Below are positions 5,683 through 51,048 of a stretch of DNA of 64,000 bases, one piece after another. The notes below the pieces were generated by a model. It saw nothing but the letters and a program-made list of their open reading frames with translations, did no database searches and was not told where the DNA came from. This DNA comes from Zygnema circumcarinatum SAG 698-1b (taxonomy: Eukaryota; Plantae; Zygnematophyceae), in NCBI GenBank assembly GCA_037447605.1, contig CM074815.1, positions 1,488,001 to 1,552,000 of the forward strand, given 5' to 3'. How positions within the stretch are numbered: the first letter of the stretch is position 1; each line of letters starts with the position of its first letter. Made by a program: the position numbers and the translations under genes.

Positions 5683-13712
<8,030 letters not shown>

Positions 13713-29723: not shown

Positions 29724-30801
29724 TTACGCCTTCCTTCTCACCACCACCACGGGACACGTGGCATGATGAACGCAATGGTCGCTCACTGATCCAAGCAGCG
29801 CCCTGCATGCAGCATCCCGCAGGTTTTCAGTCAGTTCAGTCGACTAATTCAAATTATTTTTCTAGTTCAATACCGACTGTCCTGTACTTGATGCCATCCT
29901 TTTGACCCACCTTTGCACGGCGCCATATCCGTGCGAGCCCATGACAAGAAGGCCCGCTTGCAGCTGCTCCACCGCCGCGCAAATGGCCTCTCGGGGCTCT
30001 CCCGATATCACGTCCATTTCCGCCGCCACCTGTTTCATGCAAACACCATAAACATTCAAATTCAAGTGTTCCCAAATCGTACTTCCCACACTGTTCTGAG
30101 CTCTTCCCTGCTCTTCTGCTTTGTTGAAACCGCAGGTCACCTTCAATGGCACTCGCTCAAAGTGGCGCTCATTGGAATAGTCCATCGCATGTCTCAATGC
30201 TAGGCACAACTTCTATTTGCTTTAAAATAAAGAAAATTACGAAAAAAAAGGGTTTTTAGAGGCGAGAACAAGGGGTGGAGTGGCTCACATTGTGCGCTCT
30301 GCACTTCTCCATGGCGGCCGCCAGCAACGTGCGGCTGCGGCTCTCTTCGTACTTTTTCACCGCGTCCACAACCTCCGGGGCAATGTAGAACCCTGCAGGG
30401 CCGGGGATACCTGCTGCTCAACCAGGAGAAGGATCAGCAAAAGAGTATAGGCTCTAAGGAGTAACTGTTTTCAGAATTAGGGCAAGGAGATGCAACTGCT
30501 GAGAGAGAGCAGAGGTACCTGTGGCCCCCCCAGCGGCGCCATAGACGTGCAGAATGGCCTGCACGTGCAGAAGGTGAACCCGGTCCCCCCGCTGGACCAG
30601 GTGCTGAAGCGCCCAATCCAGCGCGTAGCTGCTCTCCTCGCTCGCATCCACCGCCACTACCACCTTCCTCGCTCCTCCTCCTCCCGCCCCCTCGCCCTCT
30701 CCATTCCCTCCCGCACGCTCCGCAACCGCATCCTCCACTTTAGGGTTTGCAGCGTCGGCCTGCGCTGATGCGGCGTTCTGCGACTGCTCTACGTCCGCCA
30801 T
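29724..30801 (-). CDS. Universal stress protein A-like (USP), 4 exons
   Basis: Exons 30801-30519, about 30410-30289, 30029-29911, 29802-29724. Motifs [55 protein letters not shown]. Confidence 0.92.
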
Positions 30802-30969
30802 TGCTTCTTTTTCTACTGCCACACCCTTGCTCTCTCTCTCGCCCTCTTCCTCTCCCTCTCCCTATCTCTCTCTTTCCCAAGTTTCCGCAGTCCTGTGCAC
30901 TGCCCTTGCTCCCTCCCTTCCATATACAGACGGTGGACTTCTTAAATCTGCCAATACTCCACCAATGGC

Positions 30970-32042: not shown

Positions 32043-33322
32043 TGCGTGCGCTGCAAACAGGTCTCTTACCACGCATCATGCATCTCCGGCAGACTTGGAC
32101 GGCCCTCCATAGAGACAGAGGCCAATTCATCCTCGGAAGGAGGAGAGGTGGGAGGGGGATGCGGGAGCGAATCGCACCGCTTGAGCGTTCCGTAGCCATG
32201 GCTGCCAATGACGATGACGTCGGCATTCAGCTGCTCTCCTGTAACACATATGACGTCTCCTGGCTCCCCCATTCGCATCATGACCTCAGCTTTGACCTGG
32301 CACAGCATCGAGAAGTAAGCAACTACAAAGCGATTATTGCGCATGAAGGGAAAACATTTCCTTTCTCAACCAGGCGAACACAGAAACAGATTATACGATG
32401 TTTTCTATTTCAAACTTTCTGTATGAGTCGTGACAGTGACGCCCTGTCTGGATATTGACATGCACCTTATAAGGTGCAAGTCAATAAAAGTCAAACGAAT
32501 TATCCATAACTGCAGCAGTGGCGTGAGGCATTAGGGCTAAGGGTCCGCACATTCATGGCGGTGCAATAGTCCTTCCACGCCGCCAGAAGTTCCTTGCTCC
32601 TGCTCTCCTCGTACAATAGTTCCGTCTGGAAGGCGTTTGCTGCTGCAGATGCAGCCAAGGTGGAGATGCTTCCTGCAAAAAGCTCCGCGGGAGTTCATCC
32701 CTGAGAGAAACGACCCCTTACTGTACTGCCGGTTTTAAGCAGCGCATGCACATGCATGCAGAATTGAATCCTTTTATCCGTTCAACTGAATGTCTGCACC
32801 CGTTCGCTTCTATTCTGAAAGGCTGACTCCTTTCAACTCAGTCATTTTTCTACAGGGACTCTGCTACATACGGCTATGCTGTGCTGCAACGTCGCTCGCT
32901 CTAACAATGAAGGCCAGCTACCTATTCCATGGAACTTACTTCCCATCTCGTCAGGGAGAGATAACAAGTCTCCCATCATCTGTGCAAACTGTACCTCGAC
33001 GACTTCTCCAATGATCATTCCACTTTCTATGCATCCACTCACCTGCTGCAACGGCGGCTGCCGGAAGCTGCGGAATCCTTTGAGCGTGCAGAAGGACGAT
33101 GGTATCACTCGGCCGAGCGATATTCTTCGCCGCCCATCGCAGCGCCTCCATGCTCTCCAAGCTGTCATCCACTGCAACGAGAATCTTGCGCCCCTCTCCC
33201 TTCCCCCCCTCTTCGCCTGCGCCTCCTCCACGGCCTTCCTCCACCCCTTCTCGACCCTCCCCTCCTGCCCTTATACTCGCTGCTGTCTCTGCCTGCTGAG
33301 ACTCACTGCTTACAGCCGCCAT
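31682..33322 (-). CDS. Universal stress protein A-like (USP), tandem paralogue, 4 exons
   Basis: Exons 33322-33043, 32672-32551, 32296-32178, 31769-31682. Motifs KILVAVDDSLES, VIVIGSHGYGTLKRALMGSVSDYCVHHAKCPVVVV. Confidence 0.92.
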
Positions 33323-34409
33323 GGCCGGCGAATGAAAGCGAGCACGGGAGAGTGCGAGCGGCGAAGCGGGGAGGGAGCGCGCGGGAGGAAGGGGCAGAGA
33401 GGCTGCCCTAGAGGAGGGGAGAGAAAGAGGCCGCCATGCCCTTGCCGCTGCTGCAGGCAGCCATGCTGCTCTCCCTGCACGCCACGTGGCCTTGCAGAGC
33501 GCGCCGGCGGCTCGCATGGCGGAGGGAGGGAGAGGCGGACGGGCGGAGGGAGGCTGCGGACCTTTTGAAGATTTTGTGTCTCAGAAATTTTGATATTCAA
33601 AGTGTGATTGCCAAGTCAATACATTTAGAAATCCCTTAACTTTTTTTTCCCTTTTCATTGACGTTGATTTAAATAATAGTTTATTGTTTTCCCCCTCCAA
33701 TTGAATTTCTTCTTGATGATCGTCGAACATTTGAACAATTAAATATGGGTCTGACGGCTCCATTGTCTGAATCGTGGTTCGCATTTGAGACAGCGACGAA
33801 AAAGGTTCAAATGTTTCAATGGAAAAGCCAACTCCCAACTCTCTGATTCTCACGTTCAAAATAGTTTTAATTAGAATCAGACGAGAAACAATTGACCAAA
33901 ACCGTGTTCAAATGTTCGAAAAGGCTAGCTTTACAGCATCTGATGGAGCCATGAAACTGTAGAGGCCATAGGTAGAAGAACTTCACTTCCAGTCTTCACT
34001 ACCTTCACACATTCGTCTGTAACGCTCCTGCAACAGTGAACCCTCAAGCGTTTGCCTCTCCAAGAATGGGTGGCACTTTGAGCGAGTTCAAATTGTGGTG
34101 TGGAAGAGTATATCTGCACACCTTTTCCTTATTGCGAGTACGAAGAATCCAGTTTATTCAAAACAGCGAACACCTTCTTCGAAGTCTGCTTTCATGACAA
34201 GACCTGAAAAGTGCTCACACAATTGCTCTCCTCTCCCTTCTCCAGGACTACCCAACCATACCTCCCTCCCGCCACAGCCGTCCATCACCCGCACCTTTCC
34301 CCCTCTACACCCCCCCCCCCCCCACCACAGCTCGATCTCCCTTTCCTAGCCCTCCCAATAATCCTCACAGAAATAACAGAATACACATAGATACAGGAGA
34401 GCGGGTCCA

Positions 34410-38454: not shown

Positions 38455-39071
38455 GGTCACACATGCAGCCTCTGAATTCAGAGGCTCTGCACGTTAGAGC
38501 CGGGAAGGCTAGCCCTGCAAGAGTAAGTGCAGCCCCTGCCCATGGCTGCTAACCCTCACTTGCTGTCGTATCACTTGACATCATCCGAAGCCATTGCAGG
38601 TAGCAGGACCTTCCTGCTGTTGCAGTAACGCGAAGCCCAGAAAGGGAAGCAGGAGCACTGATAGCAAGCTCAGCCCACCGCGGCAGGCGCACACAGACTA
38701 TGGCTGCGGCTCGCCGCCTCCGCAAGCGCAGCCATGGCGCCGGGTAGAGGCCAGGGGGGGGCGTGGCGGCGGCCTTCTTCTGCCACGTGGCGATTTGAAC
38801 GGAGCTTTACCCCGCGATTGGAAAGACTAGAGGCGGAGGCGGAGGGAGAGGCGGAGGGAGAGGGAGAGGGAGAGGGAGAGGGAGAGGGAGAGGGAGAGGG
38901 AGAGGGAGAGGGAGAGGGGGAGGGAGAGGGAGAGGGTTAGAGAGAGGGAGGCCTGCTGCTGCCTCATTGCAGGCCTCGCGGCAGGGGAGAGAGAAGGGGC
39001 CGGCTTCTCTCCCTCCATGAGAGAAGGCTGGGCAGCCTGCTGCGAAGACCTCCCCTTGCGCTCCGCCTGCC

Positions 39072-41786
39072 ATGGCTTCCAACGTACTTGGAAGGGCAGC
39101 TCGGCAGGAAGCTGCCATTTCACTACCTCCCATTCCGCGCCTGCTGGTGCAGTTTGCTTCTGCCACCTGGCAGGCTGCTAGCGATGGTTTCCACAGATTG
39201 CAGGGAGGAGACCCTGCCATGAGAAGGGCTCTGCTTTTGCAGAGGGAGATGGAGGAGTACTGCACTCTGCTTGTTCGCTCTGGAGACTGCCTTTCGGAGA
39301 TTGCAAGAATATCTCACACGCCATTAGAAGTTATTCAGCGAGTGAATCGCATCAAGGATGTTGAATGCCTCATGGTGAGCTCAAATGGCGACAATGTCTG
39401 AACGTGTAGGCTGAGGGAATTCCTGGTTTTGTATGCATCGTCTTGGTTGGAGGTGCTGTTGGCTGCCCTCTGGTAGTTTGTAGGATTAATAGCCACCAAA
39501 AGCTGCATTGACAATTCCTCTATACAGACGGTTTACATACTTCGTCGTGGTGATGGATTTGAGCAGGTAGGGCAGGTCCTTCTGATTCCCCGCACTCAAA
39601 GGCACGCAGTTTCGACTAAAAGGAGACGAGCTTTTTGTGAGTGCGAATAATTTCATCCATTATCGTCATCATTACGCATCACCTTGTATAAATGTGATTA
39701 GCTAGCTTACAGAGCCAGTGCATCTAGGCACCTGACAATTAACGAGAAGGCTGCCCAAGGCTTTCTCATTTTCTTGGTCGGTTCTATGAAAAAATGCAGA
39801 GAATATGGTATAAGATAAAAGCAGTGAATTTTATATCTACAAGAGCATCTGGAAGTGCTTGGTGCAAAAGATGGCATGCGGATTTTAACGTGAAAAGTTG
39901 CACAAAGCTCAGACTTTTGAACGTGGTAGCTTCGTCATTGGTCAGCTGAGGATGAGAATGCTTCCAAAGCAACTTCTGGACTCCAGCGCTGATGAATTTA
40001 GAGACGGGCATTCTGAGCGAAAGAGCTCTTTCATTAGACTTTGTTGACGAAGCAGCATCAATGAATCAATCAATGTGTCGTTTGCAAGTATCTCGAATCG
40101 CTGACTTAAGTAGAAGGCAGGCTGGGCTGAACCATTGTAGGTGCTAATAAGGGAAGAGCCTAAGTGCAATTGATATGAATCTCATTCAACTGACTCTACT
40201 TCCTTTGCTTTGTTGCTGTGAATTTGAGCAGGGCAGAGGCCGAAGACCAAGGAGCGTTGGGCAATAGCTAATTTGGGAGACTCGCTTTGGAGTCTTGCTG
40301 ATGCATATGATGTCTCCATTGACGATCTGAGGCAAGCAAACGGCCTCCCTCAGGTAAGTGGGATGCCTCAGCGAATAGGCACCTTCAGGCTGCAGCTGAA
40401 CATTTGGAAGAAGGAATAGAAAGCTGGACTTTGGAAACAATACCAAAGAGCACCACTTTCCATTCCTGAAACCTTAGGTTGCAAGTTTGTTCAGCAAGCA
40501 GTCTCTACACTAAGCCACTTTTAATATTCTCGCGTTGCAGGATTCGTCTCATTTAGATGTAGGACAGGAAGTCCTTATCCCTTTCCCACGCAAAGCAGCA
40601 GAACCGAGGAAAGTCTTGCCTGGAGGGGATGTATTTGCAGCATTGAAGCAGTGGAAACTAGACACAGCCTTGCTGGCTCTGCACTTTTCCATGCGTCCGG
40701 AAGTCTTGAAGGGTGTGCCCCTGGTGGGTAGCCCACACGTGATGCGGATCATGCCACTCTGGAAGCCGGAGTCTTTTTGTGTTCCTGTGAGCGGGGGCTG
40801 GCTCAGCTCTTACTATGGCTGGAAAGGTGGGCGCAGATTTTTCCCTTGCTCAGTTATCACTGCTATTGGAAGAAGGGGTGTGTTTTCACATTTGTGACCA
40901 CAGGACTGGGGGGTTAAATTGGACAATTGGCTAGGCAGAAGTTAGGAGACACATTTATGCACCAATTCTTCCTAGTGTAAGCATCAGGTGGTGCTTTTGG
41001 TGCTGAGCAGAGGAGGTATTGCCGCTCTAGAAATCAATATAGCGACATCAACGCCTTATTTTTCCATAAAGTACGCTTTCAGTCGATGTGTCCTTCATCC
41101 ATTGAGCACACAAAGTATGGATTTATATTGGCTGCCACTTTTATTTCAGTCTGCAGCATATTCATTTTGCACATGGTATTTAGCATAACGGGTAACTGGA
41201 AGAGTAAATTTGTTTCCATAGTGGACATTAACAAGCTTTGGACTCTGACTTGACTCAATCTTTCTTCTATGGTTGAAGAGAATCTGCATCATGGTAATTA
41301 TCTGGAATTGGCAGCTGGAATTGGATGCAGATGGACGCTACTACTTCCACAACGGTATTGATATCGCAGTGGAGGAAGGGACGCCAGTTGTAGCTGCTAC
41401 AAGTGGCAGAGTAAGTGCAGCTTATGTTTCATATCTTTGGGAAAAGTCCTCTCCCATGGCATGAGGAGAGTGTGGTTGTTTCCTGCTTGGACTTATCGCA
41501 GGTTGTTGCCCATGTTGTTCCGTTCTGTCCCTCTTTGCAGGTGACTTTCTCCAACTGGAAGGGGGGATATGGGAAGACGGTGTGCATGGATCACGGCAAT
41601 GGGTACTCCACTCTGTACGCGCATAACGACAAACTTCTTGTAAAGGCAGGGCAGCTCGTGAGGAAGGGCCAACCCATCGCCCTCTCCGGCAACACGGGGC
41701 ACTCCACAGGACCGCATCTGCACTTCGAGGTCCACCGGGAGGGACTGTCGATTGATCCGCTTGGTGTGATTCCACCCATCACCTGA
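39072..41786 (+). CDS. 2xLysM + peptidase M23 (LytM/NlpD/MepM-like) protein, 6 exons, 368 aa
   Basis: Exons 39072-39374, 39567-39636, 40232-40353, 40541-40826, 41331-41410, 41541-41786 (1107 nt, in frame). LysM1 LLVRSGDCLSEIAR...VGQVLLIP; LysM2 ANLGDSLWSLADAYDVSIDDLRQANGL...LDVGQEVLIP; M23 HNGID, GGYGKTVCMDHGNGYSTLYAH, GNTGHSTGPHLHFEV. Confidence 0.92.
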
Positions 41787-42156
41787 TCCTTTCTTCCTTC
41801 CTTCCTTCCTTCCTTGTCCTTATTGTCTTCCCCTCGTCCCCCACCTCACTTGGCGGCAGGCCGACTGGTCAAGCTTCAAGTGGCAGGTTGTACAGAGAGC
41901 CATCAAACGGTGGCAGGAGTTCATTATGGTCCTTCGGTTGAGCAGAGCATGGGCACGCCAATGTGCAGCTATCCTCTCCGCTCCGCAGAATGAATGAATG
42001 AATGAATGAATGCAGCAGCGTAGAGTAGAGAGGGAACGAGTGGCTAACTGGCTCGCTCGCTCGCTCGCTGTGGTGTCCTCCCTTTTGTTCCAGTTTTGAG
42101 TGAGACGGAGAGGGTCCCCCCCTTAGGCAGCCACCCCTCCTTAGCAGCCCCCAGTG

Positions 42157-48098: not shown

Positions 48099-49305
48099 GG
48101 CCTGCGGGCCCGAGCTGGGCCCGGAAGGCTTCTCAGCATCTGGTGGCCACTGAGGTTATTGGTGCGACCCATTGTTTGAATTAACCAGTTTGACTAAAAT
48201 CGATATGTTACGCCTGTAGGGCGGCTTTCCTTGAAGATTGGTTTGGTTCTCAGTTTATTCAAAGCGAGGCTCTATAGCCTCGAGACCCTGCTCAGGCACA
48301 GCTCTTGTGCCTCACTGCGAGGCAGCCCGTTAAGCAAGTCTTTTTATTGGCCCACCTTAGGATGGCAGAAATCTGCATGATGGACGCCTCATGTCCATGT
48401 CTCATCTCATGTCTCATCTCTCATGGATGTTTTGGCATGAACAATTGGAACATGTGAGTTAAACATGTGAGTTGGTTCTTGGATTGTGTGAGGTTTCAAG
48501 GTCCTCCCGATGAAAGTGTAACGTTGTTCCTTCACGCGAGCATCATGGAAAATGGGAAGCAACATTAGGGCGAATCTAAAGTGGGCAGTCACAGAGGCGT
48601 CGAGCTTTCCCTTTGGACTGCCCCACGCTCTGTTCCTCCGCCCGTGAAGGCACACGCCACGGCGGGCACCGAAACTCAAAGCTCCTTTATTCGTTCTTCA
48701 GGACGTAGGAAACCACGAGAAGTTTGTTCTCAGATTAGCGCAACGAACGACAGCGGCTGAACACATGTGAAAGTGGCTTTTCCCGACAGCCCACGTCTGA
48801 ACGGTTCAGGGAAAGACCCACAACGGATAGTTTTATTTTTACAAAGAAAAAAGACCAACCAATCAGCGCACGGAAACCTCCGTCACGTATGGCGAATTCG
48901 TTTCTGCGATGTGCGCGTACTTCCGAGGTGTATCGAATATCGAGTCCCGGCAGTACTCGATACCAATACATTAATATATATTCCGATACATAACCGATAC
49001 CATCAAATATATATTCCGATATATGAAGATATCGTACGATATATCTCCTTTACACGTCCCTGTCACCGATATTTCCCCGTCCCGACCCGGCCGCAGCCGC
49101 CGACCCCAGTCCGACCTGTCCAGTGCCGCCGCTAACCGACAAATTCCAGGGTGCTGCCTGCCGCCCGGGCCCGGCCTGTCGCCAGGTGGCCATACGAACG
49201 TACAGAATCCCACACGTGTCCCAGGACGCGGCAGCCAATGGGGGCCCTCCGCCTCCAGGCCCTGTCAAGGCCCTGCGCCAGAGGCGGGCAGAAGCCTGCT
49301 CGCCA

Positions 49306-51048
49306 TGGCTGCCGCCATGGCTGTAGAGGGTGGGGGGAGGGAGCGGGGGAGCGCCGTCTGGGACTGCCCGGACCTCGCCATAGCGTGCTTCTGCCAACTG
49401 GACGTCAAGAGCCTCTGCTCTGCCACGTGTGTGTGCACAGCGTGGCGCCATCTGGCAGGTCAGCGCTGTTTCTCTGCATGTTGTTTGCTGCTGTTGAGAG
49501 GGTTCATGGTTTTGGAGCGGAGAATGAGAAATGTTTGAAGGTGCAGGATCGGAGGAGCTATGGAGAGCGAAGATGGAGTCTATTTATGGCCCTGCGCTGC
49601 CGCTCTCTCTCCCTCAGCAGCGTCTGGAGAAGGGGTTGGGCCATTGGAAGCGGCTGCTTAAGAGCACGTCGGATCTCCGACAGTCCCTGACATTCCGCCA
49701 GGCTCTTTCTCCCGAAGGCGTCGCGTCCTCCAGTCAGGCGGGCACTCTCAGCATCGATTGGACTCTTTGTGACGAGTACTTTTGGAGGAGTGAGGTGATT
49801 GTACTCTCTATTGCATCTGTAAAAGGTTTTTTAGTCCTTTTTTGAGTTCTGAGTTGCTTCAATCGCATCCTGATTTCGGCAGCTTGTGACAGGAAGGGCC
49901 TCAGCTGGCCTCAGTTATTTCTGTCAACGCGCTGCTGCGCACTTAACTTTTGAGGACTTCTGAGGATGTATGCACAGGTGACCGGCAATCCGGAGGGTGA
50001 GGAGTATCTGACCTATAAGCTGGAGCAGCCCCTCTGCATTGTAACCGGCGTGGAAATAGTTCCTGCTTGTCTTCGACGTATTTATGCGCCTCGGCAGCTC
50101 CAGGTGACTGATTTTACTTATACCTGGCGTATTGTGAGGCTGTTGTTAAGTAAAAAGCAGCTTAAATTTCTGATGAAGTTCAGAATACCTGTCTTATGGC
50201 CTTTAGCCAGCTGCATGAGCCTTTCCTTTCCAGAAGATGTAATGGTATACTTGGAGAGTTTCTGATGATTTGACATTTTTCAATGTTTAGAATGTCAAGT
50301 AAAGAAAAAATAAGCTTTGTCAACTTGAACGAAGATTAAAGTCAACAGGTTTCTGCTCCCGAGAAACCCTCCATGTTTGATCATTCGGTTCCGGCTAATT
50401 CACGACGTGCAGGAACAGACATGTATCTTGAAAACTCACACCCTGCACAGCCCACAGGACTAAGCGTATTCTATTTTATCAAAAAACGGCTTTTAACTTG
50501 CGCCCAGAGTCATTGGTGCAAAGTTTATTTGTTGTTTCTAGCCATACATCAATTTCTTGGGAAAGTCTGGCTATTAAATGCGTTTATTGATTCTTTTCTC
50601 GTCACTACTGGATGCCATCTTCTGCTTTTCGCAATGCCTTCGTGAGCCGCATCAGTGGATCTGCCGAAGGTCGGAACAAACGGGCAATGGAGAAGTCAAA
50701 CTGAGTCTGATTTGAGGAAATCGTAAGACCTTGGTTTTTACCTGTGTTCATGATGTTTCTGAAACGCAGGTGGACGTTGGGTTTGACGAAACACAGTTCC
50801 ACTTCTCATCTCATACTGAGAACGTGGAAAATGAGTTGGCAGCCCACACCCTGCTGTTCCAAACCCGTGGCCTCGTGGTGGGAGACCATGTCCGCTTGCG
50901 CCTGAGAGGGATGCATGAAGCAAATGCGGAGCCTGTAGAAGGTTTCAACTTTGGAGATTCTTTTTGCATGGCCATACAACGCGTACGCATTTTTGGAATT
51001 CCAATAGGTATGAAATGCCTAAATAGAGCCAAAGTTCAAAGCAACTAA
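49306..51048 (+). CDS. F-box protein (At4g00755-like); 3' end uncertain
   Basis: F-box-like VWDCPDLAIACFCQLDVKSLCSATCVCTAWRHLAGSEELWRAK; C-terminal FWRSE...EEYLTYKLEQPLCIVTGVEIVP...IYAP...MAIQRVRIFGIP. Exons at about 49306-49458, 49546-49794, 49978-50103, 50770-51048. Confidence 0.72.

Follow-up and report, generated by a model that had tools for sequence, protein, structure and literature searches.

Is the intron-containing LysM-M23 gene of the conjugating green alga Zygnema circumcarinatum SAG 698-1b the algal counterpart of DipM, the peptidoglycan hydrolase of plastid division, or is it a different enzyme, and on which peptidoglycan would it act? The stretch analysed, hereafter the window, covers 64,000 nucleotides (assembly GCA_037447605.1, contig CM074815.1, positions 1,488,001 to 1,552,000 of the forward strand), and the coding exons of the gene lie on its + strand at 39072-41786. 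Here, we report that this streptophyte alga has a functional nuclear gene at the locus. Its predicted product is a 368-aa LysM-LysM-linker-M23 zinc endopeptidase whose active site is complete. The gene is of bacterial descent, and, judged from its sequence, it differs from the plastid-division genes DipM1 and DipM2 of the moss Physcomitrium patens.

The gene has six coding exons. Exon 1 (39072-39374, 303 nt) carries the start codon, which is the first ATG after an in-frame stop, an N-terminal extension of ~63 aa and the initial two thirds of LysM repeat 1, and it ends at a GT donor at 39375. Exon 2 (39567-39636, 70 nt, ending in phase 1) is flanked by an AG acceptor and a GT donor and brings the end of LysM 1 (VGQVLLIP) and a basic spacer; exon 3 (40232-40353, 122 nt) brings the initial two thirds of LysM repeat 2. 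Exon 4 (40541-40826, 286 nt, again ending in phase 1) holds the end of LysM 2, a family-specific linker and strand 1 of the M23 domain (VPVSGGWLSSYYGWK), followed by exon 5 (41331-41410, 80 nt) with the M23 segment containing the HxxxD zinc-ligand motif (FHNGID), and by exon 6 (41541-41786, 246 nt) with the remainder of M23, including LYAH and HLH, and the TGA stop at 41784-41786. All five introns are of the GT..AG type (phases 0, 1, 0, 1 and 0), and the exons sum to 1107 nt, i.e., 368 codons plus the stop TGA. The protein thus laid out consists of the N-terminal extension, two LysM repeats, a linker of ~85 aa and an M23 (LytM-type) domain. Please note that the window protein was analysed exon by exon, and that natural orthologues were used as stand-ins for full-length searches and for the structural model.

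This exon structure is matched by an mRNA. Exon 6, used as query against protein representatives, found P0076, a protein of 352 aa, which is encoded by an uninterrupted 1059-nt open reading frame (ORF) on contigs of 1.4-1.6 kb from five sequencing runs; these contigs are spliced mRNA of a related alga. One of them, L045, maps exon by exon to the window, with blocks that end at the exon borders and abut at all five junctions. Relative to P0076, exon 1 corresponds to residues 1-85, exon 2 to 86-108 (65% identity), exon 3 to 113-149 (89%), exon 4 to 150-244 (66%, gapless), exon 5 to 246-271 (92%) and exon 6 to 272-351 (95%). P0076 was called from an internal ATG; L045 has an in-frame ATG 16 codons upstream (348-395), which would give a 368-aa protein, and since the N-terminus read from there, MTSNAIL..., parallels MASNVL... 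of the window, 39072 is supported as the start codon. Downstream of the stop, 41873-41927 (+) is 80% identical to L045 positions 1524-1583 (blastn) and is probably a segment of the 3' untranslated region (UTR). Compared with the P0076 mRNA, synonymous sites are saturated (proportion of synonymous differences ~0.7), and the M23 exons are still 92-95% identical in protein. The ratio of nonsynonymous to synonymous rates (dN/dS) is ~0.005-0.01 in the M23 exons (~0.01 in exon 5), ~0.14 in exon 4 with the linker and 0.06 overall. The gene is under strong purifying selection.

Both kinds of domain are recovered by Pfam. The LysM match of exon 1 (residues 68-96, profile positions 3-31, continuing into exon 2) reaches 19.7 bits by itself against a PF01476 cut-off of 20.9, and it falls below the cut-off because intron 1 splits the repeat. 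The LysM match of exon 3, continuing into exon 4, scores 34 bits (E 2.8e-8) against the same PF01476 cut-off, and the orthologue P0076 likewise has two LysM stretches (84.5 bits in total). Exon 4 by itself gives no Pfam match. Exon 5 covers profile positions 2-23 of Peptidase_M23 (PF01551) and exon 6 covers 25-96, so that the domain runs continuously over the proposed splice; exon 6 alone scores 94.4 bits (E 4.9e-27, cut-off 28.7), and P0076 scores 127.8 bits. In an M23 peptidase zinc is bound by HxxxD together with the second His of HxH, and the catalytic histidines are the first His of HxH and that of the upstream YAH; the window protein has HxxxD (FHNGID) in exon 5, and LYAH and HxH (GPHLHFE) in exon 6, aligned with the corresponding residues of TagE and the Neisseria M23 peptidases. 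The alignment of exon 6 extends to the active enzymes ShyA and LytM. In P0076 numbering, H251, D255, H299, H330 and H332 are invariant in 11 family members, and the first four are invariant also over 93 sequences that include bacteria.

A structural model of P0076 points the same way. With an 11-sequence alignment AlphaFold gave a mean predicted local distance difference test (pLDDT) value of 57, a model superseded by that from the 93-sequence alignment, in which pLDDT is 94-96 in M23, 86-92 in the LysM repeats and 61-67 in the linker. Foldseek relates this second model to the LytM domain of EnvC, to StM23 and to LytM (E 1e-12 to 1e-9, template modelling score by target length 0.8-0.89), and the predicted LytM fold also matches ShyA and the LytM domain of Caulobacter DipM.

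The gene belongs to a family that forms a single, distinct eukaryotic clade of conjugating green algae and mosses. A profile of eleven members scores the family at 427-676 bits and the next match at 218 bits, and in a single-sequence search with P0076 the scores drop from 284 to 173 bits at the family edge. Named members come from P. patens (XP_024357048.1 and XP_024366610.1, both orthologous to the window gene), from Spirogloea muscicola, Mesotaenium endlicherianum and Closterium, and from several species of Sphagnum; within the length window and annotation limits of the search, no chlorophyte protein lies above the score gap. A linker motif, LLRPE..L ... P.W.PE.FG.P, is specific to the family and absent from bacteria. 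The moss loci were reached through an exon 6 word search limited to proteins of 45-142 aa, which returned fragments that led to the moss contigs. Sphagnum-type metagenome contigs and two P. patens chromosomes (L043 and L044) carry the same six exons in unchanged order, with identities to the mosses of 34-40% in exon 4, 77% in exon 5 and 73-74% in exon 6; exon 2 was matched in Sphagnum (L002) only, being so short that it yields no score in the P. patens loci. The readable intron borders are identical in position and phase in the alga, P. patens (L043, L044) and Sphagnum (L002), and the gene therefore predates the split of conjugating green algae and land plants. An alternative isoform annotated for the P. 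patens orthologue (P0394, isoform X2, 379 aa) has LysM and no M23 Pfam match, and may thus represent a splice form that lacks the catalytic domain.

What, then, would such an enzyme do? We consider the best explanation, at a probability of roughly 55%, to be a LysM-M23 endopeptidase distinct from DipM that acts on plastid peptidoglycan. M23 DD-endopeptidases such as ShyA, MepM and LytM cleave the peptide cross-links of peptidoglycan. In the window protein, the two LysM repeats would anchor the enzyme to the glycan strands of the thin layer of peptidoglycan that lies between the membranes of the chloroplast envelope, and the M23 domain would cut peptide cross-links of the D-Ala-meso-diaminopimelic acid type, as ShyA and MepM do; this cutting would loosen the sacculus and permit growth or division of the plastid, either alongside DipM or as a complement to it. 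The plastid wall layer is the suggested target because all named members belong to lineages that have plastid peptidoglycan and because antibiotics against peptidoglycan synthesis block chloroplast division in Closterium (PMC3398972). Moss plastids make peptidoglycan of the diaminopimelic acid type (PMC9434261).

Several observations weigh against this plastid function. No recognisable signal peptide is found in the N-termini of the window family; the algal N-termini are weakly transit-peptide-like, those of the mosses are acidic and highly charged, and the N-terminus is predicted to be a conserved helix, not a variable presequence. The Closterium members P0168, P0189 and P0256 have an intact M23 domain in gene models without LysM repeats, which may be either a real domain loss or a mis-annotation. 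Within the length window and annotation limits of the search, no liverwort, lycophyte, fern, Klebsormidium or Chara protein scores above the gap, although these lineages keep peptidoglycan genes as well, and this patchy membership makes the link with plastid peptidoglycan loose. Lastly, no enzymatic, localisation or mutant data for any family member were found in the searchable literature.

Part of this also favours the rival that stands best, namely that the enzyme works outside the plastid on foreign peptidoglycan, killing bacteria or trimming fragments (for immunity or nutrition) in the cytosol, the vacuole or the apoplast, after a horizontal transfer. An unconvincing plastid presequence, the acidic moss N-termini and a distribution patchier than that of plastid peptidoglycan genes all suit it, and so does the position of the clade in the free tree, near Halanaerobiales-type Bacillota and away from cyanobacterial DipM. 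However, a secretion signal peptide was not found either, the confinement of the named members to lineages with plastid peptidoglycan speaks against it, and no seed-plant protein lies above the score gap (again within the length window and annotation limits). In addition, a missing predicted signal is weak evidence, because PpDipM1 of P. patens also lacks a predicted presequence, yet is processed and plastid-associated, and PpDipM1-HA (hemagglutinin-tagged) is located at the chloroplast surface (PMC4015805). We regard the foreign-peptidoglycan enzyme as a serious but clearly less probable alternative to an endopeptidase of the plastid wall.

Trees of the M23 domain (169 rows, 124 columns) give the bacterial background. 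The streptophyte clade has a support of 96-97 in the Shimodaira-Hasegawa-like approximate likelihood ratio test (SH-aLRT) and sits near Halanaerobiales and some metagenome proteins with weak support (86-87), and a cyanobacterial DipM clade (SH-aLRT 99; the orthologue of Synechococcus elongatus DipM, Gloeomargarita and Phormidium) is separate from it in the free tree. Forcing streptophytes and cyanobacteria together cost 9.9 log-likelihood units and was not rejected by the approximately unbiased test (p 0.28; 58 rows). Two LysM repeats occur in all three groups, and the spacing from LysM to M23 is ~34 aa in the Bacillota-type P0257, ~87 aa in the window family and ~150 aa in cyanobacterial DipM. 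Bacillota two-LysM M23 proteins of 290-320 aa align over their full length at 31-39% identity; a scan of bacterial genomes with two peptide patterns hit mostly Desulfotomaculia and Peptococcaceae, though the patterns were chosen and so allow no fair ranking of donors. Domain order, active-site motifs and fold are alike in the window family, ShyA of Vibrio, MepM of Escherichia coli, NMB0315/NGO1686 of Neisseria and the Bacillota proteins (Halanaerobiales, Desulfotomaculia), whereas the bacterial LysM-M23 proteins have a signal peptide or membrane anchor where the streptophyte proteins have their conserved helical N-terminus. A non-cyanobacterial donor is tentatively favoured.

These considerations can be combined into a more far-reaching picture, which we hold only tentatively and would sooner doubt than defend: the family would be a second plastid peptidoglycan endopeptidase independent of DipM, a 'space-maker' whose cutting of cross-links would give the wall layer room to expand as the organelle grows, gained from a non-cyanobacterial bacterium before the split of conjugating algae and land plants and lost in most land-plant lineages.

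That the window gene is itself the algal orthologue of DipM, splitting plastid peptidoglycan at division, is improbable. The nuclear-encoded DipM proteins of Cyanophora and P. patens degrade murein in zymograms, chloroplasts are few and giant in the dipM1 dipM2 double mutant of the moss, and DipM homologues were reported from charophyte expressed sequence tags (PMC4015805, Miyagishima et al. 2014), a report that would suit orthology, as would the similar arrangement of LysM and LytM/M23 domains and the preserved ligands. The window protein, PpDipM1/2, Cyanophora DipM and Synpcc7942_0598 all have LysM repeats ahead of an M23 domain that is catalytically intact, the proposed substrate, peptidoglycan between two envelope membranes, is the same as for plant, glaucophyte and cyanobacterial DipM, and P0076 shares ~35% identity with the DipM orthologue of S. 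elongatus over 88% of its length. Cyanobacterial DipM, however, is 480-610 aa long with ~150 aa between LysM 2 and M23, against ~87 aa in the window family, and its separate clade in the free tree argues against orthology. The comparison with the moss is more direct. The published primers encode the ends of PpDipM1, MVFKWPTLR... and ...PLKWVRL-stop, and the start of PpDipM2, VFKWLTPK; the P. patens co-orthologues of the window gene start with MSSWLRDLL or MTSWLRDLL and end in ...LPPL, thus differing from DipM1/2 at both ends, and none of the ten DipM1/2 primers is present in the 23-kb loci of these co-orthologues, allowing up to 3 mismatches. In this comparison the primers served as a proxy for PpDipM1/2 (deposited as GI:567757316 and GI:168028139; PMC4015805), whose sequences themselves stood outside the tree; a motif scan of roughly 450 collected proteins did not turn them up. 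The occurrence of the gene in lineages that keep plastid peptidoglycan, which the sequence-only reading had expected, agrees with the membership of conjugating algae and mosses; the identity with plastid-division DipM that it implied fails on this different gene pair of P. patens and on the 0/10 primers.

Four P. patens homologues were listed in 2014, two of which, the untested GI:168061355 and GI:168053993, were set aside as likely horizontal transfers (PMC4015805). We infer, mapping GI to XP numbers by exclusion, that XP_024357048.1 and XP_024366610.1 are these two "additional DipM homologs". The window gene and this moss pair share six exons, the readable intron positions and phases and the LysM-LysM-linker-M23 order, and they form one clade, with an N-terminal extension that is short and Ala/Arg-rich in the alga and long and acidic in the moss. 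In contrast to the probable transfer into the moss proposed in 2014, the family is also present in algae, which makes it older.

A role as a non-catalytic LytM factor, activating amidases or lytic transglycosylases in the manner of EnvC, NlpD and Caulobacter DipM, seems hardly likely. The LytM fold is present in all of these, LysM is found also in NlpD and Caulobacter DipM (PMC10336132), and among the best fold matches of the model are those to the LytM domains of EnvC and of Caulobacter DipM. These three proteins, however, are regulators with degenerate active sites, while the window protein has every ligand and shows none of the degenerate, metal-free character of LytM factors: aligned with E. 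coli EnvC it keeps histidines where EnvC has Y/N and S/Y, no family member departs from the zinc ligands or the catalytic histidines, and constraint in the M23 exons is very strong. The initial proposal of six exons encoding a 368-aa LysM-LysM-M23 protein, with HxxxD (HNGID) and HxH (HLH) intact unlike in EnvC and NlpD, is thereby upheld, in its gene structure by the splice sites, Pfam and the related alga's mRNA, and in its active site by the EnvC alignment. Bacterial contamination, a chance chain of ORFs or a pseudogene is rejected, and the intron-containing eukaryotic gene recognised at the outset is confirmed, by five canonical introns at positions shared with mosses, by spliced mRNA in a relative, by eukaryotic flanking DNA (microsatellites, split Usp and F-box ORFs) and by dN/dS far below 1.

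The surroundings of the gene are as follows. A (GAGGGA)n microsatellite at 38840-38935 lies ~140 bp upstream of the start codon, likely in the promoter or 5' UTR, and short (TGAA)n and (CTCG)n microsatellites at 41985-42075 lie ~200 bp downstream of the stop codon. On the other strand, 6-9 kb upstream, are two neighbouring universal stress protein (Usp) genes, at 29865-30822 (-) and 32954-33517 (-); P. patens has a Usp gene (L043, 15675-18570) that follows the orthologous M23 gene at a distance of 2.4 kb downstream. This proximity in alga and moss may be microsynteny or chance, the Usp family being large and the orientations different. An F-box ORF at 49023-49535 (+; Pfam E 4.9e-5) is probably one exon of a larger gene. 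Further away, at 10204-12467, a 2.1-kb (GA)n tract followed directly by (AT)60 explains why GC and AT skew reach extreme values in the composition profile.

Combinations of LysM and M23 in glaucophytes, charophytes and bryophytes have already been noted (PMC6362431). What is new here is that the window gene is not a DipM orthologue, and that its family is an old clade of conjugating algae and mosses and not a moss-specific transfer; the family is uncharacterised and yet, by prediction, bears every mark of an active enzyme. Work on the remodelling of plastid peptidoglycan rests on few genes, namely the Mur genes, that for penicillin-binding protein (PBP), MurJ and DipM1/2, to which MltB and VanY are reported to be added. 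The study of moss peptidoglycan hydrolases by Utsunomiya et al. in 2020 reportedly covered MurJ, MltB and VanY and not M23. The other Physcomitrium LysM-M23 pair is no moss oddity; it is old, strongly conserved, predicted to be catalytically intact and present in the algal sister group too, and caution is due that not every plant LysM-M23 gene should be called 'DipM'. An old and conserved family of this kind is a candidate for the activity, so far missing, that cuts cross-links when plastids grow or divide. If it were indeed a 'space-maker' for the wall layer, this would explain how chloroplasts lacking dipM1 and dipM2 in P. patens are still able to enlarge.

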